Shown here: piece after piece, positions 8,804 through 53,038 of the stretch | How positions within the stretch are numbered: position 1 is the stretch's first letter | Layout of the letters: each line of letters starts with the position of its first letter | Assembly: GCA_950097015.1 (NCBI GenBank) | Contig: CATNEN010000028.1 | Location: 310,001-374,000, forward strand | Direction of reading: 5' to 3' | Length of the DNA stretch: 64,000 nt | From: Macrostomum hystrix | Lineage: Eukaryota > Animalia > Platyhelminthes | Translations under genes and position numbers: made by a program | The notes under the pieces: generated by a model | Told to the model about the DNA's origin: nothing | Databases searched by the model: none | The model's input: the letters and a program-made list of their open reading frames with translations, nothing else

Positions 8804-8810
8804 CGCTCAC

Positions 8811-9077
8811 AGAGGCCGCAGTGATGGCACAGCATCCGCAGGCAGCGAAGACAATCGCAGCAGAGACGACCCAAACTCGAATCCCGGCCCAGACTGTGCA
8901 GCTGGGCCTGCTCTGCCCTGCACTTTCCGCTGACTGCGTCGCCGACTCTTCCGCCGTAGCAGCCGCGCTGGGTGATGCTGGCCCCTGTTGGTCGTCCAGA
9001 GTTCGATTCCGACATGACTGCGGTCGGAGCCGTTAGCATTCGACTTGAGATCCGCTGCTCACTGAGGTCGCTCTGAC
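8811..9077 (-). other. Candidate upstream exon of KChIP
   Basis: Unique GC-rich island between two arrays, ending in a minus-strand donor CT|GTGAGC at 8810. One frame without ATG joins in phase to an acceptor TTTCAG at 7767. Confidence 0.35.
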
Positions 9078-9094
9078 CTGACATGAGGAATTTT

Positions 9095-10690: not shown

Positions 10691-11097
10691 CAGATTTAAT
10701 TGTTCATCATTCACGGCCAATATCATAGGAGATGTAATTTCGTCAGGCGCATTGTTTTGGATTCGTCTGAGTGTCAGTGCAGATGACGTTTGCTTTATTG
10801 ATTGATTCTCGCCCACGTGAGCAAACGCAATATCCCCACCCCAATACTGTCGCCCAGTGAATCTGATTTGCATTTAAATGCTAATCGACAGTCAGTCTGA
10901 AATTCGAATAAAAATAGTATGTACCGAAATTTCACCCCCTGCTGTTTTCGCTCAACGTTGCTTTCCGATTCAATGTGAAAGCAAGCGGATTAATACCTTG
11001 CGATAACTGAAATATTGCTAATTTGAATGATCCTAATACGAAATAATGTAAACTTACTTTCATACTTTATAGTTCTAATTTCAAATAAAATAAACAT

Positions 11098-18200: not shown

Positions 18201-19925
18201 GACAGGAGAGAGAGATGGTAGACAGGAGAGAGAGATGGAAGACAGGAGAGAGAAATGCTAGACAGAGAGATGGTAGACAGGAGAGAGATGGTAGACAGGA
18301 TAGAGATGGTAGACAGGATAGAGATGGTAGACAGGAGAGAGATGGTAGACAGGAGAGAGAGATGGTAGACAGGAGAGAGATGGTAGACAGGAGAGAGATG
18401 GTAGACAGGAGAGAGATGGTAGAGAGGAGAGAGAGATGGTAGACAGGAGAGAGATGGTAGACAGGAGAGAGATGGTAGACAGGAGAGAGATGGTAGACAG
18501 GAGAGAGATGGTAAACAGGAGAGAGAGATGGAAGACAGGAGAGAGAAATGCTAGACAGAGAGATGGTAGACAGGAGAGAGATGGTAGACAGGAGAGAGAT
18601 GGTAGACAGGAGAGAGATGGTAGACAGGATAGAGATGGTAGACAGGATAGAGATGGTAGACAGGAGAGAGATGGTAGAGAGGAGAGAGAGATGGTAGACA
18701 GGAGAGAAATGGTAGACAGGAGAGAGATGGTAGACAGGAGAGAGAGATGGAAGACAGGAGCGAGAGATGGAAGACAGGAGCGAGAGATGGAAGACAGGAT
18801 AGAGATGGTAGACAGGAGAGAGAGATGGTAGACTGGAGAGAGATGGTAGACAGGAGAGAGAGATGGTAGACAGGAGAGAGAGATGCAAGACAGGAGAGAG
18901 AAATGCTAGACAGAGAGATGGTAGACAGGAGAGAGATGGTAGACAGGATAGAGATGGTAGACAGGATAGAGATGGTAGACAGGAGAGAGATGGTAGACAG
19001 GAGAGAGATGGTAGACAGGAGAGAGATGGTAGACAGGAGAGAGATGGTAAACAGGAGAGAGAGATGGAAGACAGGAGAGAGAAATGCTAGACAGAGAGAT
19101 GGTAGACAGGATAGAGAAGGTAGACAGGAGAGAGATGGTAGACAGGAGAGAGATGGTAGACAGTATAGAGATGGTAGACAGGAGATAGAGATGGAAGACA
19201 GGAGCGAGAGATGGTAGACAGGAGAGAGATGGTAGACAGGAGAGAGAGATGGAAGACAGGAGCGAGAGATGGTAGACAGGAGAGAGAGATGGTAGACAGG
19301 AGAGAGAGATGGAAGACAGGAGAGAGAGATGGAAGACAGAAGAGAGAGATAGTGGACAGGAGAGAGAGATGGTAGACAGGAGAGAGAGATGGTAGACAGG
19401 AGAGAGAGATGGAAGACAGGAGCGAGAGATGGTAGACAGGAGAGAGAGAGAGATGGTAGACAGGAGAGAGAGATGGTAGACAGGAGAGAGAGATGGAAGA
19501 CAGGAGCGAGAGATGGTAGACAGGAGAGAGAGAGAGATGGTAGACAGGAGAGAGAGATGGTAGACAGGAGAGAGATGGTAGACAGGAGAGAGATGGTAGA
19601 CAGGAGAGAGATGGTAAACAGGAGAGAGAGATGGAAGACAGGAGAGAGAAATGCTAGACAGAGAGATGGTAGACAGGAGAGAGACATGGTAGACAGGAGA
19701 GAGAGATGGTAGACAGGAGAGAGATGGTAGACAGGAGAGAGAGATGGTAGAAAGGAGAGAGAGATGGAAGACAGGAGAGAGAGATGTAGACAGTAGAGAG
19801 ATGGTAGACAGGAGAGAGATGGTAGACAGGAGAGAGAGATGGTAGAGAGGAGAGAGAGATGGAAGACAGGAGAGAGAGATGTAGACAGTAGAGAGATGGA
19901 AGACAGGAGAGAGAGATGTTAGACT
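15300..19925. repeat. 18/20-nt purine-rich minisatellite GATGGTAGACAGGAGAGA with ~1.43-kb higher-order duplication
   Basis: Direct periodicity; identical translated blocks at offsets of 1430-1432. Confidence 0.97.
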
Positions 19926-20334
19926 AGATATGAGGCACAATATCCGTTGTGTGTCCAGGTAAATCCCTTCGGTTTTTGTTTGCACTTTTGCTGCAAGCGA
20001 AAATCAAGATCGTTTTGTTCGGTGTTGGAGCACGTCTGCCTGTGATTTCATCCAGAGATTAATTTTTTTTTTTCGCTAAGCAATGCCAGGGAAGAAATTC
20101 GTTTTCCGTCCTTCTGAAATTTTAAATTTCCGTTTCTTCAATTCGCTTATATCCCCTCAGAAAAGCTGTTTCAATCGCGCTCACTTTATTCAAAGCGCCC
20201 AAAACACTGGCCTCAATGAGCTGCAGTTTTCATTTATAATAATATTTATACCAGTTTTTTAGTTCAACCGCGTTTCCCCTAAAAAATCTCCCCGTTGTCA
20301 TAAAAAGCTGTTTTTTCTTGAATTAAAGCCATCC

Positions 20335-21837: not shown

Positions 21838-24800
21838 ATGGGTAACGACAATTCCAAACAGTTTATGTCCGACTTTCAGAACAAAAAAGTTACGCACGAG
21901 TTTCGGACCTTTTTTGGTGAGCGCGAATTTGAAAATTGAGAAAATTTCTAAGAAATAGCTTCTTTTCATTACGTATCTATTCTTATTTCTTTGTAGATTT
22001 TAACAAAGATGGCTCGCTCACTGAGAAAGACTTTGTTGAGGCTAAAGAGGTTTGCATTGTGAATCTATCATTGACTGCCATTTGAAATCATAAAAGTGTG
22101 ATTTTGCAGTGTATTTGCATTTTTCCCAGCCATTTCGAATCCCAAGACTGCCATTTTGAGTTCTAAGACTGCCATTTTGAGTTCTAAGACTGCCATTTTG
22201 AGTTCTAAGACTGCCATTTTGAGTTCTAAGACTGCCATTTTGAGTTCTAAGAAGACTGCCATTTTGAGTTCTAAGACTGCCATTTTGAGTTCTAAGACTG
22301 CCATTTTGAGTTCTAAGACTGCCATTTCGAATCCCAAGACTGCCATTTTGAGTTCTAAGACTGCCATTTTGAGTTCTAAGACTGCCATTTCGAATCCCAA
22401 GACTGCCATTTCGAATCCTAAGACTGCCATTTTGATTTCTAAGACTGCCATTTCGGATTTAATGACTGCCATTTCGAATCCCAAGACTGCCATTTTGTGT
22501 GTTTAGCGGCCAGGTTCAGGTTCTTGGCTATTTTCTCAATCCTTTAGAAAATTTGCCAAATGAGCGGCTGGAAGCCCAGCATGCCGCAGTACGGCCACAT
22601 GGAGACTCTATTCAATGAGGTCTGGCAGAATTTGCACAAAAGCGCCAACGAGAACGGCGACGAGGAGATCTCTGAGGAGGAATGGGCAAGTTCGCGGGTT
22701 CGAATCTTGATAGAATATAACTACTATGAGTAGTTTCTTTCTAAAGAAAGTTCATTGTATGTATCCGTTTTTCGATACATATCGGAGATTAAAATATTAC
22801 AAACACCGACATTCTCCCCCTCAATCGGTTGCCAGTGCGCCATGTGGGACTCGCTGTTCGAGAAGATGGCCCGGGATCGAATCCTGGCCGAGAAGGAAAA
22901 GCGAGACTTTCAACTTGAATTGCCTGGCTGGCTGCATCGCTATTTTGAGTACAAATTCAACTTGCTGGACAGGACCCGTGAGACTCACTAATCACTCTAC
23001 TTCAATCTGATCACTCTACTTCAATCTGATCACTCTACTTCAATCTGATCACTCTACTTCAATCTGATCACTCTACTTCAATCTGATCACCCTACTTCAA
23101 TCTGATCACTCTACTCCAATCTGATCACTCTACTCCAATCTGATCACTCTACTTCAATCTGATCACTCTACTCCAATCTGATCACTCTACTCCAATCTGA
23201 TCACTCTACTCCAATCTGATCACTCTACTCCAATCTGATCACTCTACTCCAATCTGATCACTCTACTCCAATCTGATCACTCTACTTCAATCTGATCACT
23301 CTACTTAAAGCTGATCACTCTACTTCAATCTGATCACTCTACTTCAATCTGATCACTCTACTTAAATCTGATCACTCTACTTCAATCTGATCACTCTACT
23401 TCAATCTGATCACTCTACTTAAAGCTGATCACTCTACTTCAATCTGATCACTCTACTTCAATCTGATCACTCTACTTAAATCTGATCACTCTACTTCAAT
23501 CTGATCACTCTACTTAAAGCTGATCACTCTACTCCAATCTGATCACTCTACTTCAATCTGATCACTCTACTTCACTCTGATCACCCTACTTCAATCTGAT
23601 CACTCTACTTCAATCTGATCACTCTACTCCAATCTGATAACTCTACTTCACTCTGATCACCCTACTTCAATCTGATCACTCTACTTCAATCTGATCACTC
23701 TACTTCAATCTGATCACTCTACTTCAATCTGATCACTCTACTCCAATCTGATAACTCTACTTCACTCTGATCACCCTACTTCAATCTGATCACTCTACTT
23801 CAATCTGATCACCCTACTTCAATCTGATCACTCTACTTCAATCTGATCACTCTACTTCAATCTGATCACTCTACTTAAAGCTGATCACTCTACTTCAATC
23901 TGATCACTCTACTTCAATCTGATCACTCTACTTCAATCTGATCACTCTACTCCAATCTGATAACTCTACTTCACTCTGATCACTCTACTTCAATCTGATC
24001 ATCTACTCCAATCTGATCACTCTACTCCAATCTGATAACTCTACTTCACTCTGATCACTCTACTTCAATCTGATCACTCTACTCCAATCTGATAACTCTA
24101 CTTCAATCTGATCACTCTACTTCAATCTGATAACTCTACTTCAATCTGATCACTCTACTCCAATCTGATAACTCTACTTCAATCTGATCACTCTACTTCA
24201 ATCTGATCACTCTACTTCAATCTGATCACTCTACTCCAATCTGATAACTCTACTTCAATCTGATCATCTACTCCAATCTGATCACTCTACTCCAATCTGA
24301 TAACTCTACTTCAATCTGATCACTCTACTCCAATCTGATAACTCTACTTCAATCTGATCACTCTACTTCAATCTGATAACTCTACTTCAATCTGATCATC
24401 TACTCCAATCTGATCACTCTACTCCAATCTGATCACTCTACTTCAATCTGATCACTCTACTCCAATCTGATAACTCTACTTCAATCTGATCACTCTACTT
24501 CAATCTGATCACTCTACTTCAATCTGATCACTCTACTCCAATCTGATAACTCTACTTCAATCTGATCATCTACTCCAATCTGATCACTCTACTCCAATCT
24601 GATAACTCTACTTCAATCTGATCACTCTACTCCAATCTGATAACTCTACTTCAATCTGATCACTCTACTCCAATCTGATAACTCTACTTCAATCTGATCA
24701 TCTACTCCAATCTGATCACTCTACTCCAATCTGATCACTCTACTTCAATCTGATCACTCTACTCCAATCTGATCACTCTACTTGAATCTGATCCATTTAC

Positions 24801-30170: not shown

Positions 30171-30703
30171 ACAGCAGCAGCAGCAGCAGCTAAGCGGCTA
30201 CTATGGCCAGGAGTCGGATCACAAATCGTCCGAGATGAAGCCGCCGCCAGTTTTGTCTTCGGGCTATGCCCAGTTCAGGGGCATTCCGCCTGACTCGCCG
30301 ATGTCACATCTGCACTATTCAAGCTTCGGTGGCGGCGGCGGAGGCGGTGGAGGCGGTGGCGGCAACTCCAACGGAGGCGGCGGCGGTGGCGGCGGCGGAG
30401 GCGGAGGCAGCGGCGGAGGCGGCGGAGGATCTCATCAGGTTTCATCTGGAACCTCGGCCGAGATGGAAGAGATCAACACGAAGGATCTGGCGCACCGCAT
30501 TAGTGCGGAGCTGAAGCGTTACAGCATTCCGCAGGCGGTGTTCGCCCAGCGCGTGCTGTGCCGCAGCCAGGGCACCCTGTCTGATCTACTTCGCAATCCC
30601 AAGCCTTGGAGCAAGCTCAAATCGGGCCGGGAGACATTTCGCCGAATGTGGAAGTGGCTGCAGGAGCCGGAATTTCAGCGTATGTCGGCACTCAGGCTGG
30701 CTG
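29695..30703 (+). CDS. ONECUT: Onecut transcription factor, coding exon 1 (poly-Q/poly-G N-terminal region and CUT domain)
   Basis: CUT domain EEINTKDLAHRISAELKRYSIPQAVFAQRVLCRSQGTLSDLLRNPKPWSKLKSGRETFRRMWKWLQEPEFQRMSALRLA. Phase-1 donor G|GTGAGT at 30704, the conserved Onecut intron position. Confidence 0.96.
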
Positions 30704-30764
30704 GTGAGTGAGGGTTGATTCTTGGAACCCAGGCCTGATTAGTGTCTTCAAATAGGCATAAACC

Positions 30765-32804: not shown

Positions 32805-33300
32805 CCCCTCTCCTCTCTCACCTCTCCTCTCTCCTCTCTCACCTCTCCCCTCTCCTCTCTCACCTCTCCTCTCTCCTCTTTCGTCTCTCCTCTCTCCTCT
32901 CTCACCTCTCCCCTCTCCTCTCTCACCTCTCCTCTCTCCTCTCTCGTCTCTCCCCTCTCCTCTCTCACCTCTCTCTCACCGCGTCTGGAGTTGCCTTGGT
33001 TCGAATCCTGATTTCAATTTTTTCGATACATATCGGAATCGATTCCAACATTTGATTTTTGAAATTCAATGGGCAGTGTCCTCTCTCCTCTCTCCCGCTC
33101 TCTCTCTCCCTCTCTCCCTCTCCCCTCTCCTCTCTCACCTCTCCTCTCTCCTCTCTCGTCTCTCCCCTCTCCTCTCTCACCTCTCCCTTCTCCTCTCTCG
33201 TCTCTCCCCTCTCCTCTCTCACCTCCCCTCTCCTCTCTCCCCTCTCCTTTACCCCATCTAGTCTCTCCCCTCCACTCTCCTGTGTCCTCTCTGGTCTTCA
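32805..33300. repeat. CT-rich low-complexity array interrupted by the 32980-33106 element
   Basis: Same CTCCTCTCTCGTCTCTCCC units on both sides of the insertion. Confidence 0.88.
32980..33106 (+). mobile_element. 5'-truncated copy of the hammerhead-carrying element, inside a CT-rich array in the Onecut intron
   Basis: About 5 differences from the reverse complement of 44706-44833; starts at CGCGTC|TGG; B-box at 32998-33008. Confidence 0.7.
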
Positions 33301-34849: not shown

Positions 34850-35705
34850 AACCCCTGGTTCTTCAGGTAGAGTAATTATCTATAAAAACTCCTGGTTCTT
34901 CAGGTAGAGTAATTATCTATGAACACCCCTGGTTCTTCAGGTAGAGTAATTATCTATGAACACCCCTGGTTCTTCAGGTAGAGTAATTATCTATAAAAAC
35001 TCCTGGTTCTTCAGGTAGAGTAATTATCTATGAACACCCCTGGTTCTTCAGGTAGAGTAATTATCTATGAACACCCCTGGTTCTTCAGGTAGAGTAATTA
35101 TCTATGAACACCCCTGGTTCTTCAGGTAGAGTAATTATCTATGAACACCCCTGGTTCTTCAGGTAGAGTAATTATCTATGAACACCCCTGGTTCTTCAGG
35201 TAGAGTAATTATCTATGAACACCCCTGGTTCTTCAGGTAGAGTAATTATCTATGAACACCCCTGGTTCTTCAGGTAGAGTAATTATCTATGAACACCCCT
35301 GGTTCTTCAGGTAGAGTAATTATCTATGAACACCCCTGGTTCTTCAGGTAGAGTAATTATCTATGAACACCCCTGGTTCTTCAGGTAGAGTAATTATCTA
35401 TAAAAACCCCTGGTTCTTCAGGTAGAGTAATTATCTATGAACACCCCTGGTTCTTCAGGTAGAGTAATTATCTAAGAACACCCCTGGTTCTTCAGGTAGA
35501 GTAATTATCTATGAACACTCCTGGTTCTTCAGGTAGAGTAATTATCTATGAAACCCCTGATTCTTCAGGTAGAGTAATTATCTATGAAACCCCTGATTCT
35601 TCAGGTAGTGTCATTATCTATGGAATCCCTGGTTCCTATTCTTCAAGTGATAACATCATTAAACACCTGGTTCTTCAGCGGGGCGATAATTATCATTAAC
35701 CCTCA
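34850..35705. repeat. 37-nt minisatellite CCCCTGGTTCTTCAGGTAGAGTAATTATCTATGAACA (Onecut intron)
   Basis: Period 37. Confidence 0.96.
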
Positions 35706-37674
35706 AATCTTCAGGTGTCTAAATTGCATCAATTCAAACAAACTGAACCGTGGGAAGGTTTTGGGGAAAAATAAAATTGAAACTCAAATCTATTTTAGAT
35801 TTTTATGAAGGCATATGCATTGAAAAATAAGCTTTTTCCTAGCTCAGAAGAATCAATTGCTTCTTCATCGGGGCCAGCGGGAGTCATTTCGAGATGATTA
35901 AAAAAGAGAGAGACAAAATTCTCTTCAACAGAGAGTCGACCAGATTTGCTTGATTATAGCCTTCGTGAACAAGCGGTCGCTGATTGCTCCCTGCCAGAGG
36001 TGCCCGCCCACCACCACTCTGCAGACAGGAGCCTTTTGAAATGCTCAACTTCAGCACGGACTCTGCGTCCACATTCTTGCGCAGCTTTTTGTTTAGTGCC
36101 TCCGACTCAATCATTTTCTGCCAGCCAGCAGCGGAAGATGTTGAGGCCAGAAGAGGCTGGAAGAGGATTAGAAAGAGAAAAAAACGTTTCTCTTTTCTTT
36201 TGGACAACTTTTTCAGCGTTGAAGAGGCAGACGAGAAGGACATGCTCAACAGTGGCTAATTGCCGACATTCTCATGCAGACAATTAGACAGAAAATAGGA
36301 AAACTATGATCAACTAGGGAAGGCTTCGCTTTGACTTTTCCTAGAAACTTCGCATGAAGGATGGGTTGGTGGCTTACTGCGCTATTGGTAGAGCGAAAAT
36401 ACCAGAGTATTGTATATATTATATAAAGTATAGTTAAACTGCCTGAATAAAGCTTTTTTTTTAAAAAAGCATCCATGCGAGAAGGTGAATAATTTATCCT
36501 TGAGTTGCAGATTCCGCTTTGGCAGGTGAATATGCCGTGTGAGGGGAAGAAATTACTGACAGAAAAAAACATGAGAACTGCCGAACAACTCGACTAAAAT
36601 TTATACTAGCTTCGTCGGCAGGTAAATTGGGATTTCTAGTCTAGCTTTTTAGCGACACTCCTAAATCATCTCTTCCTAATTCCTAAGCAAAATAGTTAAA
36701 CAGGTGCATTGGAATTGCTTGGAATTTCCTATACTTCAAAACTGTAAGATTATCCCCTTGTTTTTGGCGAAAGAATTTTCCCGTTATCCGTCCCTCGCAT
36801 ATCATAGAACAAAAATCGCTTGGGATTCGGCCTTTAAAAACTAAATATAATTTCCCAACGGAGTCTAAGCCTATAGCCTATAGCTCCAAACTGCTTGGCA
36901 GCCATTTTGTGAATAGAGCCAGTTTTTCGCACACAGATTACACGCAAGACCGAAGACAAGGGACTAAGACCAGGAAAGAGAGGAGTTTCTCTGAACTGAA
37001 CTAGAGTTTACTAGACCAACAAGAAGAGGAAAGGCATGAACAGATTTTGGGCCAGACTGTCTGTCTGCGTCCCTCTCTGTCCCTCCTTCTTGTTCAAGGA
37101 CCCTCTCGACAGGACTAGCCAGAGCCTAGAACCTGCCAGTGCTCAAACTGCCTTCCAAAGAGCTCACCAAAAACTCCCTAAGATTAGGGACTGCAGAAGA
37201 ACAAGGGGGCTGGGCGCTTGGTGTGAGAGATGATGCGACACACATAGCTGCTGGTGCGCGGGGTGTATTGAAGGCGAAGGAAAGATGTGATTTGCTGCTC
37301 CGAGTCTGCAGCAGACTTTCGGTTCCCATGCTTCTTCAGAAATAACCCACACCCTACAGCTCCAGCTTCTCCTATTCATCGCTCTCTTTCTTTCTGTCAA
37401 ACTTGGCGCCTGAGCTGATCTGGCTCGCGAGACCGAGTGTTCCAGGTGCAATTTTCCCTTGCCCGCGCATTGCGATTCCTTGCTTTTCCCAATGCGTTGT
37501 TTCACAAATGGTTTACTGTGAAACAGTCAGTTGGAGGTCGGTCATCTATACGATGGTGGCGTCAGCCTCAATACAATGGCCCAATTGAAAACAAATTTGA
37601 TAATGGAGCAGAAAAATCTCTGAAATTATTACGTGACCATGCGTAGAGAATCTGCAGCTGAATATGAGTAGACA

Positions 37675-37945
37675 TTTTCTTAGAATCGCTGATAATAACT
37701 AGAAGAGATTTCTTAGAATCGCTGATAATAACTAAAAATGATTTCTCAGAATCGTAGATAATAAATAAAAGAGACTTCTTAGAAACGCTAATAATAACTA
37801 GAAGAGATTTCTTAAGAATCGTAGATAATAACTAAAAATGATTTCTCAGAATCGTAGATAATGAATAAAAGAGACTTCTTAGAAACGCTAATTATAACTA
37901 AAATACATTTTCTTAGAATCTAAGATTGCGTAAAATATTTTTCTT
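37675..37945. repeat. Diverged ~33-nt AT-rich minisatellite TTCTTAGAATCG..ATAATAACTA
   Basis: About 8 imperfect copies. Confidence 0.8.
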
Positions 37946-38170
37946 AGAATCTTAGTTTATGACGGAGTCGATTTTTTAAATGTCTCACTTCGTGAAAACC
38001 AGCAGATATTTTCTTAGAACCACAAAGGTTTCGAGGCACGCCACAAGAAATCCTAAACGTCAAAAGTCAGGTCAGATTATAGGCTTTCCAATTGGATTTC
38101 AATTTCTAATACCGGAACAAAAAAGTGCCATTCATTTCTCGGACGTCTCTAGGCGTCTCCGCCGTTGCAG

Positions 38171-38991
38171 CCTGCAAGCGCAAGGAAGACGACGCCGTCG
38201 CGTCGGCCGCAGCAGCCGCGGCAGCAGCCGCCGCCGCCGCCGCCGGAGTCTGCGGCATGGCGGGTGTCAATCACGGCCACGGCAACCACGCCATGATGGG
38301 CATCAAATCGTCCGGAGCTGGCGGCGGCGGAGGCGGTGGCGGCGGCGGCGGTGGCGGCGGCTCCGAGTCAAAGCCGCCCAAGAAGCCGCGCCTCGTGTTT
38401 ACGGACATTCAGCGCCGAACTCTGCACGCCATCTTCAAGGAGACGAAACGGCCAAGCAAGGAAATGCAGGCCACAATAGCCCAGCAGCTGGGTCTCGAGG
38501 TTTCCACAGTGGCGAATTTTTTCATGAACGCTCGCCGTCGCTCGCTGGACAAATGGCAGGAGGACAAGGACGGCCGCACCGGCAGCACCGACTCGCTGCT
38601 CTTCGACGATCAACGCTCCGAGGCGTCTTGTTTGGAAAGCGACGATCCGGCCGCAGCCGCGGCCGCCGCTGCTGCCGCCGCCGCCGCAGCAGCCGCCGCG
38701 GCAGCCGTCATCGGGCCGCATTCGGGCCATCCGCATCATCAGCACCATCATCATCAGCAACAGCAGCAGCAGCATCATCAGCACCATCAGCAGCACCATC
38801 AGCAGCATCAGCATCATCACCAGCATCAGCACCAGCACCAGCACCAGCTCCAGCAGCATCATATGCTGTCGTCGGGTACTGCGGGTCCGGCTCTGTCCTC
38901 GGCCAACCTGCCCTCGCCGCTGCCCATCGCTCTGCCGTTGAATTTGAACTCCTCCGCTGCTTCTTCGCCTCTGGTTGGCGGGTCGGCGTGA
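38171..38991 (+). CDS. ONECUT: Onecut transcription factor, coding exon 2 (linker, atypical homeodomain, poly-A/His-Gln tail); joined protein 609 aa
   Basis: Acceptor TTGCAG ends at 38170; the splice restores LRLA-A-CKRKE. Homeodomain KKPRLVFTDIQRRTLHAIFKETKRPSKEMQ..TVANFFMNARRRS has the Onecut-specific F48/M50. Confidence 0.96.
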
Positions 38992-39121
38992 CAATTATGA
39001 AGCACCACGGAAAATTTTAAATGTTGCTCTTATTTACTTTTTAAAATACTGTTGCTGCTAAACTCGAGAAGGGAGGCAGAGACGGACGGGGAATCGGGAA
39101 ATTGGTAATTGCTATTTAAGG

Positions 39122-39127
39122 AATAAA
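39122..39127 (+). terminator. Candidate polyadenylation signal of Onecut
   Basis: AATAAA 130 nt after the stop codon. Confidence 0.3.
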
Positions 39128-39204
39128 AAAAAATATTTAAGTTTTCTAAGGTATACTGTCTTTTAGAAGGTTTTCAGTTGGAAAATATGTTGCCTAAAAG
39201 ATAG

Positions 39205-39520
39205 CGTAATAGAGGTTGACTAATAGAAGGTTGCCTAATAGAAGGTTGCCTAATAGAAGGTTGCCTAATAGAAGGTTGCGTAATAGAAGGTTGCCTAATA
39301 GAAGGTTGCCTAATAGAAGGTTGCCTAATAGAAGGTTGCCTAATAGAAGGTTGCCTAATAGAAGGTTGCCTAATAGAAGGTTGCCTAATAGAAGGTTGCC
39401 TAATAGAAGGTTGCCTAATAGAAGGTTGCCTAATAGAAGGTTGCCTAATAGAAGGTTGCCTAATAGAAGGTTGCCTAATAGAAGGTTGCCTAATAGAAGG
39501 TTGCCTAATAGAATGTTGCC
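39205..39520. repeat. 15-nt minisatellite TAGAAGGTTGCCTAA
   Basis: Near-perfect period 15. Confidence 0.97.
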
Positions 39521-39861
39521 CAACGGAAGGTAAAGTTAGTTGTGATTGCCACTTTTAATCTCTCAACCTCTCCTTGTCCTTCGCAATGTTCCTTCAAATT
39601 CAAAGATAAATTTGCTTCAAATCTATTATAGGAGTGAAACAAAAAGAATTTCTGCGAATGACACTATCTTATATTTTGAAAGATTTTTTTGTTTGACTCC
39701 AAGCAGTTTTTCAATTCACGTGTACAGAATTTTTCGGAAAATTGTATAATATCAACCTATGAACTATATAGATATAGATGGCGTATATTAAAGTGCATTG
39801 TGATGTTTTTGTTCAAAAAGTTTTCAAAGAAAGCAACCTCAACTAAAGTTATAGTTTTTGC

Positions 39862-40125
39862 AGGAGGGCTGCGGGCAGTGGCATATCATTCGGTGACACT
39901 GGACCTGCAGCCAGCGAGGAGGCAATTCTGCCCATTCCGCTGACTCCTGAGCACACTCGCACACAGTTACTGTACGCAGGCACACACTCAACACAGGTGT
40001 GTACATCTGCCTTGACTTTCTCATCGTCGGGCAGTGTACACTCAATAAATGTGGCCTCGCCGTGGAATCGAACTTAGGGACCTCGGTGCAAGAGGCAAAC
40101 GCGTTATCCGCTCTGCCACCAACCC
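39862..40125 (-). mobile_element. SINE family B copy
   Basis: Reverse complement has GGTGGCAGAGCGG..GTTCGATTCCACGGCGAGGCC and the same 3' stem. Confidence 0.75.
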
Positions 40126-41011
40126 CTATTATATTATTATCATTATAATTATATTATTATATAGTTATAGCTTATTCATGAATTGAATTTTCGCACCAAA
40201 TCCCATTGCTTACTATCTGTCGCAGTTTTTTTTCTATAAACTAAAAGTTATTTATTTTTGTTGTTCATAATTTCCATATCGTGCAGTTTCTGCTTGCCTA
40301 TTGGAACAGTTTTCGTCGAAGCATCGAAATTGCCCACTAAATAGCTTTAATTATAATCCTAAATGTTGTTTAAATTTTAATATCTTAGTCAATCGTAATC
40401 CCAACGCTCTCCCTAACTGTACCCAAATGAGCAGTGAAAATTGACTAGAAATATCTACTTGTCCGCCTAATTACATTGAGCTTCTAAGTCCCAGTATTAG
40501 TTGCAACGCTCGCAAGCGAAATTAATTATTTGTACACAGACTTTTATTGCTTTTTCAATATTCCTAGCACTACCGATTTCTTTTGTTAGCTGTTGTTGTT
40601 GATTTTTTGTTCTCGTTGCTATCCAAATCACTGAGCATTGATCAGTGATTTGGGATCTGAAATCACCTTGATTTGCACCGCGATCATTATGGATTTGCTT
40701 TTTATTGAAAAATGTGTCTCTCTGTTTTCTCGGAATTAGCTTATCTGAATGGAATAAATTCATTGAGCTTTGAGGGTGGCCCCAGTGACTGATTATGAAA
40801 CCTAATGTAGAAAGCTCACTCACTCACTCACTCTATGATGCATATATTATCAGCTGCAAAATCAACTGTCCACTTCCTGCGTTTTTATTTTCACTGCAGA
40901 ATATTCAGCTTTGAGATCATATAAATTGTCAAGGAAATTCATGGCCCACTTCAGATAGTTATTCATACTCATTACACAGCTTCACGCGAACTGCCGAATG
41001 TGCTTTTGAGA

Positions 41012-42750
41012 TGCTCCACTCTCCCACTCTCCCTCTCCTACTCTCCCACTCTCCCTCTCCTACTCTCCCTCTCCTACTCTCCCACTCTCCCTCTCCTACT
41101 CTCCCTCTCCTACTCTCCCACTCTCCCTCTCCTACTCTCCCACTCTCCCTCTCCTACTCTCCCTCTCCTACTCTCCCACTCTCCCTCTCCTACTCTCCCA
41201 CTCTCCCTCTCCTACTCTCCCTCTCCTACTCTCCCACTCTCCCTCTCCTACTCTCCCACTCTCCCTCTCCTACTCTCCCTCTCCTACTCTCCCACTCTTT
41301 CTCTCCCACTCTCCCACTCTCCCTCTCCCACTCTCTCTCTCTCCCTCTCCTACTCTCCCACTCTCCCTCTCCTACTCTCCCACTCTCCCTCTCCTACTCT
41401 CCCTCTCCTACTCTCCCTCTCCTACTCTCCTACTCTCCCTCTCCCACTCTCCCTCTCTCCCTCTCCTACTCTCCCACTCTCCCTCTCCTACTCTCCCACT
41501 CTCCCTCTCCTACTCTCCCTCTCCTACTCTCCCACTCTTTCTCTCCCACTCTCCCACTCTCCCTCTCCCACTCTCCCTCTCTCCCTCTCCTACTCTCCCA
41601 CTCTCCCTCTCCCACTCTCCCTCTCTCCCTCTCCTACTCTCCCACTCTCCCTCTCCTACTCTCCCACTCTCCCTCTCCTACTCTCCCACTCTCCCTCTCC
41701 TACTCTCCCTCTCCTACTCTCCCTCTCCCACTCTCCCACTCTCCCTCTCCCACTCTCCCTCTCTCCCTCTCCTACTCTCCCACTCTCCCTATCCTACTCT
41801 CCCTCTCCTACTCTCCCTCTCCCACTCTCCCACTCTCCCTCTCCTACTCTCCCTCTCCTACTCTCCCTCTCTCCCTCTCCTACTCTCCCACTCTCCCTCT
41901 CCTACTCTCCCACTCTCCCTCTCCTACTCTCCCTCTCCTACTCTCCCACTCTCCCTCTCCTACTCTCCCACTCTCCCTCTCCTACTCTCCCTCTCCTACT
42001 CTCCCCACTCTCCCTCTCCTACTCTCCCACTCTCCCTCTCCTACTCTCCCTCTCCTACTCTCCCACTCTCCCTCTCCTACTCTCCCACTCTCCCTCTCCT
42101 ACTCTCCCTCTCCTACTCTCCCACTCTTTCTCTCCCACTCTCCCACTCTCCCTCTCCCACTCTCTCTCTCTCCCTCTCCTACTCTCCCACTCTCCCTCTC
42201 CTACTCTCCCACTCTCCCTCTCCTACTCTCCCTCTCCTACTCTCCCTCTCCTACTCTCCTACTCTCCCTCTCCCACTCTCCCTCTCTCCCTCTCCTACTC
42301 TCCCACTCTCCCTCTCCTACTCTCCCACTCTCCCTCTCCTACTCTCCCTCTCCTACTCTCCCACTCTTTCTCTCCCACTCTCCCACTCTCCCACTCTTTC
42401 TCTCCCACTCTCCCACTCTCCCTCTCCTACTCTCGGTCTCCTACTCTCCCTCTCTCCCACTCTCCCTCTCCTACTCTCCCACTCTCCCACTCTCCCTCTC
42501 CCACTCTCCTTCTCCTACTCTCCCACTCTTTCTCTCCCACTCTCCCACTCTCCCTCTCCAACTCTCGGTCTCCTACTCTCCCTCTCTCCCACTCTCCCAC
42601 TCCTACTCTCCCACTCTCCCACTCTCCCTCTCTTACTCTCACACTCTCCCTCTCCTACTCTCCCACTCTCCCTCTCCTACTCTCCCACTCTCCCTCCCCT
42701 ACCCTCCCACTCTCCCTCTCCCACTCTCCCTCTCCTACTCTCACACTCTC
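41012..42750. repeat. Polypyrimidine array (CTCTCCCT/CTCCTA/CTCCCA units)
   Basis: Almost exclusively C/T with periodic A. Confidence 0.96.
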
Positions 42751-44705
42751 AGTCTCATTTTCCCAGTTGTACCCTCGCATCGGGACTACCATTCCGTGAG
42801 TCACAATCTCATCTCGAGATTTCCGCAGCGGGTTTTGCTCGAGTGCTGAGAGTCAGTTATCAGTGTCAGAAACGCTGATATGTCTCACGCGGCCATCCGT
42901 GATGGTCGTGTCGAACAGAATTTTCGGATGCTTGGCAGCAAAGTTGCTTCATATTTAGACGCAATACTTAGTCGCCTGTCTCTCTCTGCCAACAAATTCA
43001 TCAGAGGAAGGCCCAAGGTTCTCCAGTGTGCCAACAGAAGTGCCGCTTCATTAGTGAAGTACCGCCAGCTCAACCACCCCCAACCACAGTTGCATGCCTG
43101 TCTATCGAAATCGTAGTTCTATTTTTTGTCAAGATTCTATCCTTTATACCACAGTATGACCAAATAGGTCTGATCGAATTAGAGTTACAATTTGCGGCTG
43201 CACTGTCACTGAATCTTCGTCTAATACACCAAACTGGAGTGTAATTTGGCTTTTGAAAATAGTCTGCACGTAACACGCCAGCTGTCAATCTTGCTAGAAA
43301 TTACACTCCATCTTTTCTAAAACCCGCGTCCCAACGCCACTCCTACTCCCACTGAGACCAGGTCAGTCGAGAAATAGGGCCCGTCACACTAATTCCCCGA
43401 GCAGTAGACCAGACTAGTATGCAAATCAGATTGGCTTGAAAATGTGATTAACACAATTATAAGTTGTGTAAAACATTGGGCCGACATTGGGGCTTCGGCT
43501 AATCACAAACTCGCAGAGTCCATCTAACTCTAGTCTGGTGTCTAACCCGCCTTCACTTACGCGGCGCAAGTTGGCTGTTTCTATCTAACAAACACTTCGG
43601 CGTCAGCGCCTGTCCCAGCCTGAATCTCAATGAGTCTCAAAGACCGATTGCTCAACTCCCAGCTAAAGAAGGTTTTCCTTGGCTCAGTGCTCACTGGGCA
43701 CAGAGCTAGTAGTGTAATAATAAAACTAATTTTTACTAACGAATCAATCGATTTAGACGGCGGGTCGACAACGAGCTGCGCATGCTGATCAAAGCTACAT
43801 TGAGGAGACTGCGTTTGCTGCTTAGCCTGACCCGGACTGTGTTGGCGAGATCACTGAGATTAACTACTAATTCTAAATATATTCATGGCCGTCTGATGAA
43901 CAATAGGGAGAGTGGGAGAGTGGGAGAGGGAGAGTGGGAGAGGGAGAGTGGGAGAGGGAGAGTGGGAGAGGGAGAGTGGGAGAGGGAGAGTGGGAGAGGG
44001 AGAGTGGGAGAGTAGGAGAAGGAGAGTGGGAGAGGGAGAGTGGGAGAGTAGGAGAAGGATAGTGGGAGAGGGAGAGTGGGAGAGGGAGAGTGGGAGAGGG
44101 AGAGTGGGAGAGTAGGAGAAGGAGAGTGGGAGAGGGAGAGTGGGAGAGGGAGAGTAGGAGAGGGAGAGTAAGAGAGGGAGCTAGTGGGAGAGGGAGAGTA
44201 GGAGAGGGAGAGTAAGAGAGGGAGCTAGTGGGAGAGGGAAAGTAGGAGAGGGAGATTGGGAGAGGGATTGGGAGAGTGAGAGCGGGAGAGGGAGAGTGGG
44301 AGAGGGAGAGTAGGAGAGGGAGAGTGTGAGAGTAAGAGAGTAGGAGAGCGAGAGTGGGAGTGGGAGAGTAGGAGAGCGAGAGTAGGAGTGGGAGAGTAGG
44401 AGAGCGAGAGTGGGAGTGGGAGAGTAGGAGAGGGAGAGTGGGAGAGTGGGATAGGGAGAGTAGGAGAGGGAGAGTAAGAGAGGGAGCTAGTGGGAGAGGG
44501 AAAGTAGGAGAGGGAGATTGGGAGAGGGATTGGGAGAGTGAGAGCGGGAGAGGGAGAGTGGGAGAGGGAGAGTAGGAGAGGGAGAGTGTGAGAGTAAGAG
44601 AGTAGGAGAGCGAGAGTGGGAGTGGGAGAGTAGGAGAGCGAGAGTGGGAGTGGGAGAGTAGGAGAGGGAGAGTGGGAGAGTGTGAGAGGGAGAGTGTGAG
44701 AGTGG

Positions 44706-44899
44706 GAGAGAGAGCGGGAGAGAGGAGAGAGGACACTGCCCTTTGAATTTCAAAAATCTAATGTTTGGAATCGATTCCGATATGTATCGAAAAAATTGAA
44801 ATCAGGATTCGAACCAAGGCAAGTCCAGACGCGTTTCGCTCTTATTGGAGCTCATCAGTAGAGTCTAGCCTAGCGCTCTAGCCATTAGGCTATAGGCGC
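44706..44899 (-). mobile_element. tRNA-derived (Pol III) hammerhead-carrying SINE/retrozyme-like element, most complete copy, followed by a CT-rich tail
   Basis: A-box-like TAGCCTAATGG (44892-44882), hammerhead, B-box GGTTCGAATCC (44815-44805), AT-rich body, then a CT-rich array. About 125 nt are near-identical to 32980-33106 in opposite orientation. Confidence 0.65.
44824..44868 (-). ncRNA. Minimal type I hammerhead ribozyme motif
   Basis: Minus strand reads TCTA-CTGATGA-GCTC-CAATAA-GAGC-GAAA-CGCG-TC|TGGA. It has the complete catalytic core (CUGAUGA, GAAA, UH=UC), a 4-bp stem II, a stem I TCTA/TGGA, and a palindromic helix III ACGCGT. Predicted cleavage falls between 44828 and 44827. Confidence 0.82.
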
Positions 44900-47154
44900 T
44901 TGTTCAAATCCAGCTTTCAATCTCAACATATCGTAATCGATTCGGCAGCGCCCCGCAACTCAATCCATACTCACTCAACTCCGTGGCACTGACTCGGTCG
45001 TACGAGACGCCGGTGCTGGCCTCAGAAAGAGGGAGAGAGGGAGAGAGAGAGCGGGAGAGGGAGAGTAGGAGAGGGAGAGTAAGAGAGGGAGAGTGGGAGA
45101 GGGAAAGTAGGAGAGGGAGAGTCGGAGAGGGAGAGTAGGGGAGGGAGAGTGGGAGAGTGGTAGAGGGAGAGTAGGAGAGTAGGAGAAGGAGAGTGGGAGA
45201 GGGAGAGTGGGAGAGGGATATAGGAGAGGGAGAGTGGGAGAGGGAGAGTAGGAGAGGGAGAGTCGGAGAGGGAGATTCTGTACTCATAAATTGCAATGCA
45301 ATGAAGCCCTGGCCAGCCATGGAATAGAGTGGCAGTGATTGTCGCACCGCCATTGTGTCTAATCAAGTCAGCGCCGTGGACACAATTAGAAGCAAAATGA
45401 TGAACTAAGTGGAATCGGACGCTGAGCTAAGTTTGAGTAGGGTTTGAGCACATCCGCTGGGGTGGGTTGGTTGGGGAACTAACAGTGAAACACTGGTAGC
45501 TCACACAGGTGAGTGATAATTAGTGTGCACGGGCAAGATGGCCTAGCTTTGGTTGGTATGCTTGAGTCACTTCAACCTGTAGGAAAAAGTTTTCCAAGCT
45601 TCTCTCCAGCCCCCTCAACAGTTTTTCTCATTGTTTCTTCGTTTGAAACCAGATATGGTCAGCCCAGTCAGGCAGTCAGTCAGGTCCCAATGTTCTCCCA
45701 ATGCCTATCTACACTCAGCAGTCAGTCTAATGCTTAACTAAAAGCATCTCAAGACGTAAGCTAAGTTTTCTTCAATTAAACTTCATTATGATGAAAAAAA
45801 CGAAATAAAAGACGCGATTGGAGTTCTCGATTTTCAAAATTCTTTTTTTCGTGAGCGCTTCTTTAACTAAGAAATCGGAGCAAAAATGTGCAACTATTAA
45901 GGACGTAAATGTATTTTGTCCATAATTCAATAGCTCGGAAATAATAATTTACTTTCCTTTGGAGAGGGAGAGTAGAAGAGGGAGAGCGGGAGAGGGAGAG
46001 TAGAAGAGGGAGAGTAGGAGAGGGAGAGTAGGAGAGGGAGAGTGGGATAGGGAGAGTGGGAGAGAGAGAGTGGGAGAGGGAGAGCGGGAGAGGGAGAGCG
46101 GGAGAGGGAGAGCGGGAGAGGGAGAGCGGGAGAGGGAGAGTAGAAGAGGGAGAGTAGGAGAGGGAGAGTAGGAGAGGGAGAGTGGGATAGGGAGAGTGGG
46201 AGAGGGAGAGTAGAAGAGGGAGAGTGGGAGAGGGAGAGTGGGAGAGGGAGAGCGGGAGAGGGAGAGTTGGAGAGGGAGAGTGGGAGAGAGAGAGTGGGAG
46301 AGGGAGAGCGGGAGAGGGAGAGTAGAAGAGGGAGAGCGGGAGAGGGAGAGTAGAAGAGGGAGAGTAGGAGAGGGAGAGTAGGAGAGGGAGAGTGGGAGAG
46401 GGAGAGTGGGAGAGTGAGAGTGGGAGAGGGAGAGTAGAGGAGAGAGAGTAGGAGAGGAAACAAAAGAAGCGATTGTAGTTATCGACTTTCAAATTTCATT
46501 TTCTTCTGTTCTTTTTTAACTACGAGATCGGAGCAAAAATGTGCACCAATTATGGACGTACGGGCGTACAAGTTTTGTGTCCACAAATCAATAGTTCTGA
46601 AATAATTATTTAACTTTCTTTGGAGGCCTCTAGCTCATGAAGTTGAAAGCAAATCTATTTTTCGCTCATTAGACTCGGTGACTCGAAGCCTGGCCTGAAG
46701 CTACGAGAAACTATTTTGATGCCTGATGGAGCTCAAGTCGGGGGTCTGGTTGGAATTTTAATTATTAACGAGCTGCCGAAGGCAAATTTTGAGACGGGCT
46801 GCTGCTGCTGCTGCTGCCATTGTTGTTGTCGTTGCGCAAGATGACGCCGAACGCGTGGCAATATGGGGATAAATATCCCCCATACCCCTGTTGCCTTTCT
46901 ATTCCCCCTCTCCACTGGAGAAATCTGCATGCCTTCCACCGCCCCCGAGGCGACTTTGAGCTGCCGAGACCGGACTGACAGCTGAAAGATCAGGGAAGCT
47001 TTACCCGCAGGGCCTCTACTGGGAGATTGAGAAGGTGCTGGTGCTGTTCTCCGGCTAACATTTACAGAGCAGCGAAATTAAGCCGGTTGTGCAACCATGG
47101 TCTCCATGGGGACAGGGCTTGTGTGAGTGATGTCAGTCTTTGTCCATGTAGACT

Positions 47155-48184: not shown

Positions 48185-49000
48185 TGCTTCTGGATACGAT
48201 TCTTGCTGCGATTCTAGCGACGATTCCTGCTAGGATTCTAGCTGCGTTTCCTGCTCCGATTCTAGCTCCGATTCCTGCTGCGATTCTAGATAAGATTTCT
48301 TCTGCGATTCTAGCTGCGTTTCCTGCTCTGATTGTAGCTACGATTTCTTCTGCTATTCCAGCGACGATTCCTGATGCGATTCTAGCTCTGATTCCTGCTT
48401 CGATTCTAGATAGAATTTCTTCTGCGATTCTAGATAAGATTTCTTCTGCGATTCTAGATAAAATTTCTTCGGCGATTCTAGATAAGATTTATTCTGCGAT
48501 TCTAGCGACGATTCCTGATGCGATTCTAGCTCTGATTCCTGATGCGATTCTAGCTCTGATTCCTGCTTCGATTCTAGATAAGATTTCTTCTGCGATTCTA
48601 GATAAGATTTCTTCTGCGATTCTAGATAAGATTTCTTCTGCGATTCTAGATAAGATTTCTTCTGCGATTCTAGCGACGATTCCTGGTGCAATTCTAGCTA
48701 CGATTCCAGCTCCGATTCTGGCTACGCTTCTATGTGTGGTTCTGTATACGATTCCTTCTCCAATCTAGTAAGAATTCTTTGATTCTGGCTACGTTTCTTG
48801 GTGGGATTCTAGATACGATTCCTTCTCCATCTCTAGTAAGATTCCTTCTGCGATTCTATATACGATTTCTGCTGCAATTCTGGCTACGTTTCCTGCTGTG
48901 ATTTTAGATAGGTTTTCTGATATGTTTTCCTGTAGCTCCGATTCTAGCTATGATTCCTGCTGCGATTCTAACTGCGATTTCACCTGCATACTATGCTGGA
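48185..49000. repeat. Degenerate 24-nt minisatellite TTCTTCTGCGATTCTAGATAAGAT
   Basis: Recurring GATTCTAG core; explains the repetitive 194-aa ORF. Confidence 0.85.
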
Positions 49001-49989: not shown

Positions 49990-50440
49990 TGACACCTGCC
50001 CTTATTGGGTCAGGTGTGCAGCCGACAGCACAGCCGCAGCTATTGCGCGGCGCATCTGAAGGCTGCGTACGGCTGTCCAGTCCATGGACCGGATGGACGC
50101 CATACCCACCCTAAATTACCCCAACTGATGCTGGTACCCAGAATCTAAAACTCACAACGGGGTTGTAGCTTAGTAATTGAAGGTCGGGGGTTCGATTCTT
50201 GGCTTCACTGGACCCTATAGTTGATTACACCTGCCTCAATTGGGTCAGATGTGCTGCCGACGGCACAGCTGTTCAGTCCATGGACTGGGAAGACGCCACA
50301 CCCACCCTCAATTACCCCAGCTGATGCTTATAACCCATTTAACAGCTGGGTGAAATGAAGCGATGCAGAGTAAAGTGTCTTGCTATAGGACACAAATTGT
50401 TCCAGTCTAGTCGGGAATCGAACCCCCGACCTTTAAATCA
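49990..50440 (-). mobile_element. Two tandem SINE family A copies (3' fragment 49990-50140; longer copy 50227-50440), with an opposite-strand head fragment near 50165-50210
   Basis: Shared blocks with 2506-2712; B-box at 50424-50413; terminal hairpin ACACCTG-CCC..GGG-CAGGTGT near 49992-50017. Confidence 0.7.
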
Positions 50441-51415: not shown

Positions 51416-52857
51416 ATAAAAGAATAGAAATTTCACCTCGCCACACTGGGACTGTATTGATTCTGACGCCGAACTCAATCACTTTATTGGAACTAATTTT
51501 TGCATTAGGCACAGATTCGAACTCCCGACTCACCATTCGAAAGTTCGAAACTCAACAAGCTCCCTGCGGCATAGGCGCTTTCTCTTTACTAAGAATTTTT
51601 TTCAGAAACGGTAAACGCCCCAAAAACACGGGCGCCAAACGATGCGAAATTAGAAAAACAACGCGTGCGCCTCATTGGAGAACAAAGCCGGAAGACCAGA
51701 GAGAGAGAAAGAATCACAGTTGAACAGTAATGCTCAGTCTGCACTGCATGCATCTCGCAATGCTTTACCGAGCTCAATCTCCCCCCCCCTATTCTTGGAA
51801 TAGGGTCCGCTGCAGAGAACCGATCGATGCCTCCTTGCTGCATCCGACAGACCCACCCAGCCCGCCAGTGTATCGGTTTTCATTTCCAGACTCACATTTC
51901 TGTCCTATCTATCGATATCAGCCAAGGGATTGACGAGGGAGAGCAAGGCAAGAAATAACTTTCGATTTGCTAAAAAGCCAAAAAGTCTATGGAAGAATCT
52001 CGACCCAATTTTTTTTCATATTCTTGTGTCTCCTTTATTCGGAGATTTCCTTTGATTTCCCCTGGCAGAGCGGCGAGTCACAAAAATGGCGACTGAAGGT
52101 TTCGGAATGAGACGGGGACAAACGAGATCCTCCGACAACAAAGATCCCTTGTGTGGTGTTTTTAAGTTTTTTCGATAAATCGAGCCGCAGCCATCCACCC
52201 CCCCAACCCACAGTTACCACGGGGATTATTGTCCCAGGGACTAACGATTCCCGTTAACTGCTTTCCCCTCTCTTCCATTCCCCCTTCTCTCTGTGTGTGT
52301 TCCCAATGCCCCTAGCGGGGAGGGCTACTGCGGCCTGTTCGATGCTGCTGCTGCTGCTGCCGCCGCCGCCGCCGCGGCCGCCGCAACCGCTAGCACAGGG
52401 CAGGGTTTTAAAGAACTAATATAGGATTTCAATTTTATCGAATTGCTTCCACCCACCCCGCTGGCGGTCCCACCCCCGGCCCGCGCAGTGTTGGCAGCAC
52501 TATATGTAACCGGTAGGGTTTTACCGCCGGGACCCCTGCGGACGAGAGACCGTCTTCTGCTTCTTTTCTAGGAAATCACGCAGTTGCCAACGCCGCGAAC
52601 AAAGCTGGCAAAGCTGAAATGGCGCCGACTCGTTTGAGCAGCGAAGACAAAACGCCACTGTGAAAGGTAGATAAAAACTCATGCATTGACATTTACATTT
52701 CCTAAACATACATTTTTCGATACATATCGGCTAAACTTTATAATCGAGGTCATAATTATATATATTATCAACGGCAGTATAGGAATAATTGTCACAGTGA
52801 TAAATTGGTAAAATTACAAAGACTTAAAAAATTATAATACCTTCGTACTTTTTAGCA

Positions 52858-53038
52858 ACAGGTCGGGAGTTCGAGTCTCATCGGAGTCCCACGGGGGGGA
52901 CCATTTGTGTCCAAGTGAGCAAGACACTCAAATCCATAATGCAAAAGTTCACCTAGTTCATCAGCTTGGGTAGAAGTTAAGAATGAATGTAGCGGTCTCC
53001 CCAGTCCGTGGACTGAACAGTTGAACGCAGCCTTGGGA
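52858..53038 (+). mobile_element. SINE family A copy
   Basis: GGTCGGGAGTTCGAG head, TGTGTCC..GCAAGACACT body, CAGTCCGTGGACTG at 53002-53015. Confidence 0.65.

Follow-up and report, generated by a model that had tools for sequence, protein, structure and literature searches.

A hammerhead ribozyme between tRNA-gene-like boxes in a candidate high-copy retroelement of the flatworm Macrostomum hystrix

Introduction

Repeats that carry hammerhead ribozymes have been known for decades in flukes, newts, and crickets and were later found in many other animals. The present study concerns a putative member of this group in the flatworm Macrostomum hystrix: a repeat unit on the minus strand of a 64,000-nt stretch of contig CATNEN010000028.1 (the whole stretch is referred to here as the window, and all coordinates are positions within it), in which a type I hammerhead ribozyme lies between motifs resembling the A and B boxes of a transfer RNA (tRNA) gene, the internal promoter elements used by RNA polymerase III (Pol III).

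The “canonical” type I hammerheads of metazoans have a helix I of ~6 bp, a helix II of 4 bp, and a helix III of 1-2 bp, the last capped by a palindromic loop of 2-4 nt, and they are active mainly when two units pair (PMC4209133). Judged by its sequence, the M. hystrix ribozyme is an ordinary member of this canonical type, as found in the Sm-alpha repeat and in animal retrozymes. Hammerhead_HH9 (RF02275) has the same core, and its helix II and loop are one loop base apart from those of the element, which shares its bulged helix I and palindromic mini helix III with HH9 and the canonical metazoan type (PMC4209133). In HH9, however, which is conserved as an intronic element, helix III is closed and has 3-4 bp, and the element described here is not a member of that family.

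The Schistosoma repeats Sm-alpha and Sj-alpha, which are like short interspersed nuclear elements (SINEs), resemble the M. hystrix element in being high-copy, noncoding, and tRNA-related, with boxes of the Pol III type and a hammerhead of type I in which helix III is short. According to a review, the Sm-alpha promoter precedes the hammerhead, transcription is by Pol III, and the promoter ends up at the 3′ side of the cleaved multimers (PMC6765202); this agrees with an initial annotation of the window, made from the sequence alone, which had placed the Sm-alpha ribozyme downstream of the tRNA part. By that account the promoter is upstream in Sm-alpha, whereas the ribozyme lies between the boxes in M. 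hystrix. In addition, another study reports that tRNAscan-SE calls many Sm-alpha copies tRNA-Gln or pseudogenes (PMC2770079), whereas no tRNA finder recognizes the unit described here. Compared by description, the two also differ in that the M. hystrix cassette sits inside a larger unit with inverted repeats, the copies of which lie in CT/GA minisatellites.

Animal retrozymes comprise tandem units of 170-400 nt with type I hammerheads and give rise to circular RNAs (PMC7229834). Solo monomers are common in these families (preprint 10.64898/2026.07.22.740005), and read-through by Pol I, II, or III has been proposed as the source of their transcripts (PMC7761336). The element resembles the animal non-LTR retrozymes (LTR, long terminal repeat) in its canonical type I hammerhead, its length of ~300-340 nt, its noncoding character, and its strongly self-paired predicted RNA. 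Unlike them, it was not seen in tandem arrangement or as circular RNA, and no internal promoter boxes are described for the animal retrozymes in PMC7229834.

The order of A box, ribozyme at the anticodon-arm position, B box, and T-run is shared with engineered tRNA–ribozyme genes. Such genes, with a hammerhead in the anticodon arm and expression by Pol III, were reportedly constructed by Cotten and Birnstiel in 1989. They are artificial, keep the cloverleaf, and cut in trans, whereas the M. hystrix element is natural, lacks a cloverleaf, and carries its own cut site. A literature search of partial coverage retrieved no natural hammerhead that lies between the two boxes or within the loop of an anticodon, an absence that does not prove novelty. 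Repeats bearing ribozymes are known, and it is the placement between tRNA-gene-like boxes that appears to be a new feature, for which we found no description.

Results

A Complete Type I Hammerhead Between Promoter-Like Boxes

Every letter that the initial annotation had quoted for the minus strand from 44899 to 44790 proved correct. The invariant core of the hammerhead is complete in both the sequence and the covariance-model alignment: CUGAUGA, GAAA, U44829, and C44828 are all present, helix II is closed by the G10.1–C11.1 pair, and the GUC cut site is intact. This core pattern occurs once in the window, against 0.01 occurrences expected by chance. Searched in sensitive mode, the Rfam covariance model Hammerhead_HH9 matched positions 44873-44809 with 32.8 bits (E = 2.4e-6 on 701 nt and 2.2e-4 on the whole window), the sole Rfam match with E < 0.1 in the whole window; other hammerhead models score lower. 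Because this score does not reach the HH9 gathering score of 52, an Rfam search at default thresholds was blank; the low score is due to a helix III of two pairs only and to a different spacing of helix I. The covariance-model search and the intact core together bear out the earlier proposal of a full hammerhead, and the motif is a complete type I ribozyme of the metazoan, dimer-type kind. The GCUC-CAAUAA-GAGC of helix II and its loop is close to the corresponding GUCC-CAAAUA-GGAC of Sm-alpha.

Helix III consists of one A–U and one C–G pair around a 2-nt loop, and, as had been anticipated, it is too short for intramolecular closure, which is impossible with this geometry; intermolecular self-pairing of ACGCGU was computed at −7.5 kcal/mol before the initiation cost. 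Helix I of the window copy carries a C–C mismatch at 44823. All other contigs that cover this site, in three runs, have the complement (G for C in the RNA), and this family letter restores pair 1.5–2.5, so that the family helix I comprises 7 + 4 bp with a 2-nt bulge (11 bp in total). For the family sequence, the hammerhead fold was calculated at −15.5 kcal/mol, compared with a minimum free energy (MFE) of −16.9 kcal/mol for a structure that itself includes helices I and II. For the window copy the hammerhead form was calculated at −9.3 and the MFE at −12.7 kcal/mol, and owing to its helix I mismatch this copy is probably slightly decayed and weakened.

The initial annotation had also pointed out an alternative 6-bp pairing of 44868-44863 with 44830-44825, which would mask the cut site, and had suggested a conformational on/off switch. 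The pairing is present in the sequence, but at −10.1 kcal/mol it is 5.4 kcal/mol worse than the hammerhead in the family sequence, and therefore the switch is not a property of the family. Near-equal energies (−10.1 vs. −9.3 kcal/mol) are found only in the mutated window copy, and the switch was rejected for the family.

As the initial annotation had stated, the ribozyme lies between A-box-like and B-box-like motifs that are 77 nt apart, and a T6 run follows the B box; A box, ribozyme, B box, and T6 thus stand in the order of a tRNA gene. The A-box pattern TRGCNNARTGG, for which 1.5 occurrences per window are expected, is found only at the element, apart from an unrelated 20-bp minisatellite. 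The exact B-box pattern GGTTCGANNCC has three occurrences in the window, against 0.23 expected, and two of the three fall within element copies. Taken jointly, an A box, a B box, and a T-run in tRNA-gene order are far beyond what chance would produce, and the internal Pol III-type boxes are present at the motif level only. Because the hammerhead lies between the boxes, cleavage would separate the two on the RNA.

The 20-bp minisatellite (5660-6200, minus strand) consists of AGTGGCTCAATGGCGGGGAG and variants, matches the A-box consensus eight times by chance, and adjoins an EF-hand-type coding exon at ~5350-5650; its array of A-box matches at 5688-6098 is unrelated to the element and was set aside.

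The likeness to a tRNA ends at the boxes. ARAGORN, run at default settings, with introns, and with lowered thresholds, made no credible tRNA call at the element, and 552 constructs from which the ribozyme had been excised with varied borders yielded no ARAGORN tRNA at default or 90% thresholds. The Rfam tRNA model gave no match at E ≤ 10 around the locus and none at E ≤ 0.5 across the window, and the would-be T stem and acceptor stem are unpaired. With all three approaches blank and no cloverleaf, a tRNA identity was rejected. Of the “tRNA-like head” proposed earlier, then, the A and B boxes and T6 in their order stand, and the cloverleaf does not. Nor is the cassette the head of a SINE, because the A box begins ~135 nt inside the repeat unit and contigs of high depth bridge the sequence upstream. 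The boxes were most likely inherited from a tRNA-derived SINE or from a tRNA gene.

A High-Copy Family with a Common 3′ End

Our picture of the family is drawn from one mapping of contigs from public runs onto the locus and from two copies within the window. Depths are the summed k-mer depths of the contigs, and X5 denotes a DNA run of the same organism. A repeated family, as the initial annotation had supposed, is evident from an X5 depth in the thousands and from the second, truncated copy in the window (copy 2; Table 1). The X5 depth is ~10,000 over the ribozyme and A box, ranges from 2,800 to 11,000 across the upstream 130 nt, and peaks at 35,000-44,000 over 44808-44837. The B-box segment (~42,000-44,000) is the most repeated piece and is shared with other repeat families. 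Contigs with private variants have X5 depths of 57-88; assuming that such contigs represent single loci, the ribozyme-bearing copies would number roughly a hundred or more, and the short segment comprising the cut site and the B box would be present several hundred times.

Among the X5 contigs, 36 of 49 show a likeness of 95% or more, with a single variant attaining 10% of the depth, which suggests that the family is young. The unit also extends far beyond the cassette: X5 contigs without any difference bridge 44875-44960 (depth 2,647) and 44931-44995 (depth 2,080), and the unique sequence between the minisatellite blocks runs from ~45027 to 44731.

Copy 2 begins at CGCGUC/UGGAG, 5 nt before the cut site (the counterpart of 44833), and retains T6, the ~60 nt of unique sequence that follows (44789-44731), and the CT-rich tail beyond it. 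Because its conservation continues past T6, the copied RNA was not a T6-terminated Pol III transcript. At copy 1, loose ends at 44942 and 44960 mark sites where other copies have different upstream sequence, and in one X5 contig the shared 3′ part is joined at 44831 to a different head, which carries an ordinary T-arm-like GGGGTTCGATTCCC. Thus, in small numbers, the copies have a common 3′ end, variable 5′ truncation, and a 3′ module that is shared between families, and the common 3′ end with variable 5′ ends would fit the pattern of 3′-primed reverse transcription.

Copy 2 is sense-oriented in an intron of an onecut/HNF6-type gene, between the CUT exon (30433-30705, plus strand) and the homeobox exon (38365-38565, plus strand); the best full-length onecut match has ~38-41% identity, as for example with Limulus. 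Fragments of other SINE-like repeats lie at 50300-50430 (minus strand) and 52860-52990 (plus strand), where a T-arm-like GGTTCGATTCC or GAGTTCGAGTC is followed by a GTGTCC...AGCAAGACAC core; the head that an X5 contig joins to the 3′ module of the hammerhead element is T-arm-like in the same way.

Contigs nearly identical to the unit are present in libraries, guessed to be RNA, from two related organisms. The ends of contigs coincide with sites at which copies diverge and thus carry no information on the ends of RNAs, and a 157-nt contig, both ends of which lie at such sites, was rejected as evidence of RNA ends. No further copies were found when metagenome and viral contigs were scanned with the ribozyme and 3′-module patterns, and a 45-aa frame across the element, used as a protein query, returned no candidate copies.

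Predicted Fold of the Repeat Unit

The unit (~297 nt plus a 40-nt tail) is noncoding, with stops in all frames, and its RNA is predicted to be strongly self-paired. Copy 1 folds at −105 kcal/mol, compared with −81.5 kcal/mol for shuffled sequences (z = −4.24), and the 157-nt core alone has z = −4.10. In the predicted fold the B-box segment, 44814-44795, pairs with its inverted copy, 44921-44902, in a 20-bp stem, which is extended by the outer arms, 44785-44768 and 44943-44926; the two nested imperfect inverted repeats together amount to ~45 bp per side. The predicted RNA is therefore a rod with a three-way junction, formed by this long closing stem, hairpin A, and the hammerhead arm, the last closed by AGGC/GCCU, with a separate 5′ hairpin besides. 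For hairpin A, which holds the A-box-like motif, the prediction is an extended hairpin formed by AGCGC/GCGCU and UAGCC/GGCUA, unlike the D arm of a tRNA.

Table 1. Features of the hammerhead element in the window
Feature	Position	Strand	Basis or remark
Repeat unit, copy 1 (unique sequence, ~297 nt)	44731..45027	-	Between minisatellite arrays; k-mer depth in thousands (DNA run X5)
CT-rich stretch immediately upstream of copy 1	45028..45059	-	100% identity to 33090-33121, the distal part of the copy 2 tail
5′ hairpin domain of the unit	44947..45012	-	Present in MFE and centroid structures
Outer inverted repeat, 5′ arm	44926..44943	-	Pairs with 44768-44785; 18 nt, 94% complementary
Inner inverted repeat, 5′ arm	44902..44921	-	Pairs with 44795-44814; 20 nt, 85% complementary
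Hairpin A, “acceptor plus D-arm”-like segment holding the A-box-like motif	44872..44900	-	Sequence, fold
GCGCCTA	44899-44893	-	Sequence
A-box-like TAGCCTAATGG	44892-44882	-	Pattern match; 10/11 of classical consensus
Type I hammerhead ribozyme	44817..44871	-	Rfam HH9 match, core pattern, pair list and energies
Helix I, 5′ strand, 13 nt ending UCUA	44871-44859	-	Sequence
Hammerhead core CUGAUGA	44858-44852	-	Sequence
Helix II GCUC/GAGC, 4 bp, loop CAAUAA	44851-44848 / 44841-44838	-	Sequence
GAAA	44837-44834	-	Sequence
Palindromic mini helix III ACGCGU	44834-44829	-	Sequence
C17 / cut site, C44828 before U44827	44828/44827	-	Sequence
Helix I, 3′ strand	44827-44817	-	Sequence
UGGACUUGCCU	After C44828, before B box	-	Sequence
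B box GGTTCGAATCC	44805..44815	-	Exact match to GGTTCGANNCC
T6 run, Pol III terminator-like	44790..44795	-	10 nt past B box; retained in copy 2
Outer inverted repeat, 3′ arm, within CGATA/ATCGAT-rich 3′ module	44768..44785	-	Inverted-repeat search
CT-rich tail common to copies 1 and 2	44698..44730	-	~27 nt identical after GGGCAGTGTCC, then divergence
Copy 2, 5′-truncated, including 40-nt CT-rich tail	32980..33121	+	95.5-96.7% identity to 44833-44700

Minisatellite Surroundings and Element Ends

Copy 1 is inserted in a GA/CT-rich 14-bp minisatellite, arrays of which (43905-44729 and 45028-45275) flank it on both sides, and both window copies lie in arrays that are CT-rich in the sense of the element. 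The 15-mer CTCCCGCTCTCTCTC occurs exactly only at 33092, 44706, and 45043, all three of them element ends, and a direct repeat of 17-19 nt at copy 1 is readable as a duplication, a tandem remnant, or a tail. These tail facts would fit a tandem or circular retrozyme-like ancestor with a unit of ~337 nt, an insertion into the tail of an earlier copy, or a site-specific insertion with a long duplication, and with two copies only the three readings are inseparable. The match of 32 nt upstream of copy 1 to the tail of copy 2 is the sole hint of a tandem arrangement.

The minisatellite as a whole spans ~4 kb, with periods of 14, 22, 36, and 58 bp, in two blocks of opposite orientation, one CT-rich on the plus strand (41014-42756) and one GA-rich on that strand (43905-44729, 45028-45275, and 45961-46457); the element interrupts the GA-rich block, and no element relics were found between the blocks. 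A 17-mer, TTTTCGATACATATCGG, has four exact occurrences in the window, against none expected: 22769-22785, 33020-33036, and 52714-52730 on the plus strand and 44777-44793 on the minus strand. Two of these fall within the element copies; the pieces at 22769 and 52714 share only the 17 nt with the element and were rejected as copies of it. The arms of TTTTCGATACATATCGG, CGATA/TATCG, are inverted, and the motif may serve for protein binding or belong to another repeat as a fragment.

Other Features of the Window

On the minus strand, 15323-19985 holds long overlapping open frames, two of which match the Pfam LED repeat weakly, with E values (7e-10 and 4.5e-8) that do not pass the cut-off. On the plus strand, 48188-48907 is a 24-bp tandem repeat of ~30 copies in an open frame with a weak DUF3432 match.

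Discussion

In the interpretation that we favor, and that we consider rather probable, the locus holds one isolated, weakened copy of a hammerhead retroelement that is young and high-copy, which carries its ribozyme in a cassette derived from a tRNA gene and is propagated from longer RNAs. An element of the Sm-alpha kind or of the kind of the animal non-LTR retrozymes, with ~300 nt of noncoding sequence and a CT-rich tail, is the best explanation for its overall build. Within the cassette, the sequence is best explained by a ribozyme that occupies the position of the anticodon arm, with the stem of the arm continuing as helix I.

From the sequence anatomy, the copy depth of the family, the fold statistics, and the truncated copy, all directly observed, we infer how the element may be transcribed, cleaved, and copied. 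Transcription in the hammerhead sense would yield an RNA that exceeds the cassette in length, for which read-through, an upstream promoter, or Pol III passing T6 are possible sources, and this RNA would fold into the rod with its three-way junction. The ribozyme would then cut between C44828 and U44827, with a helix III that can form only when the ACGCGU sequences of two molecules or of two tandem units pair; alternatively, monomers with the long helix I may cut weakly. Cleavage would leave a 2′,3′-cyclic phosphate and a 5′-OH, and new copies would arise by reverse transcription from the common 3′ end, which would yield 5′-truncated copies such as copy 2.

Several points weigh against this interpretation. 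No partner reverse transcriptase was identified. The copies, nearly identical with one common variant, are too alike to show the covariation that would point to selection on the ribozyme. Expression is hinted at only by contigs from the two presumed RNA libraries of related organisms. Neither joints nor circles of the unit turned up in four runs, the assembled contigs of which drop such forms, and the retrozyme circle is hypothetical. The window contains no tandem copy of the unit, both of its copies being solo, and only these two copies were read directly. Finally, the minisatellite on both flanks makes target-site duplications unreadable.

The principal alternative takes the cassette itself as the functional unit: a compact Pol III gene, with transcription factor IIIC (TFIIIC) on the A and B boxes, transcription starting ~10 nt upstream of GCGCCTA and stopping at T6, and the surrounding 180 nt as a mere carrier. 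The resulting RNA of ~115 nt would dimerize through ACGCGU and self-cleave into two halves, one with the A box and the other with the B box. The boxes speak for such a gene, since an A box that matches at 10 of 11 positions is followed after 77 nt by a perfect B box and after 10 nt more by T6, with a spacing similar to that of an intron-containing tRNA gene, and T6 is retained in copy 2. Sm-alpha, moreover, is reported to be Pol III-transcribed (PMC6765202). The 157-nt contig, which comes from one of the presumed RNA libraries, stops at the final T of T6, but it starts 40 nt upstream of the expected start, and both of its ends may be breaks in the assembly graph. Against such a gene stands the extent of the repeat, which runs ~135 nt upstream of such a transcript and continues downstream of it through ~60 nt of unique sequence and the CT-rich tail. 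The cloverleaf is also missing, and the B box is sequestered in the predicted stem, although only in longer RNAs. A compact Pol III gene is thus possible as a means of expression and fails to explain the repeat, and as an account of the functional unit we hold it to be doubtful. That the cassette is a working, natural “tRNA–ribozyme gene,” with a hammerhead in place of the anticodon loop and with internal A and B boxes that direct Pol III across it, we likewise regard as unlikely.

Two further models are very unlikely. The nested imperfect inverted repeats, with their ~45 bp per side, might suggest a miniature inverted-repeat DNA transposon, that is, a 176-bp unit (44768-44943) within 18-bp inverted repeats that carries the ribozyme and boxes as passengers. 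Yet copy homology and high depth continue well past both arms, no duplication directly abuts them, and copy 2 lacks sequence on a single side, having been truncated within the unit, and keeps its 3′ end. We give as little credence to a chance or dead look-alike, in which inactive motifs would sit in a repeat that spreads for unrelated reasons. The Rfam score below the gathering threshold, the absence of covariation, the helix I mismatch of the window copy, and the poor in vitro cleavage published for minimal hammerheads of the dimer type (PMC4209133) could all be read in its favor, but all invariant core positions are intact, including G10.1–C11.1 and the GUC site, helix II matches the HH9 consensus bar one loop base, the family sequence has the full 11-bp helix I, and a core of this kind is expected by chance only 0.01 times per window.

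The hammerhead retroelement that we favor would thus place a ribozyme of an ordinary metazoan type in an unusual setting. If the boxes are only relics, the family adds another to the lineage-specific hammerhead repeats, distinguished by its unusual association with CT/GA minisatellites. If, instead, the cassette is a working tRNA–ribozyme gene, the retroelement would have a promoter of its own, divided by the cut site that it also carries, and the two halves of its RNA, one ending in a 2′,3′-cyclic phosphate and the other beginning with a 5′-OH, would enter the tRNA-splicing ligase pathway that circularizes retrozyme RNAs. The family would then be a natural counterpart of the engineered tRNA–ribozyme expression units, and it would name a promoter for animal retrozyme-like elements. 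The cassette family gives a concrete, easily testable promoter hypothesis for the hammerhead repeats of animals.

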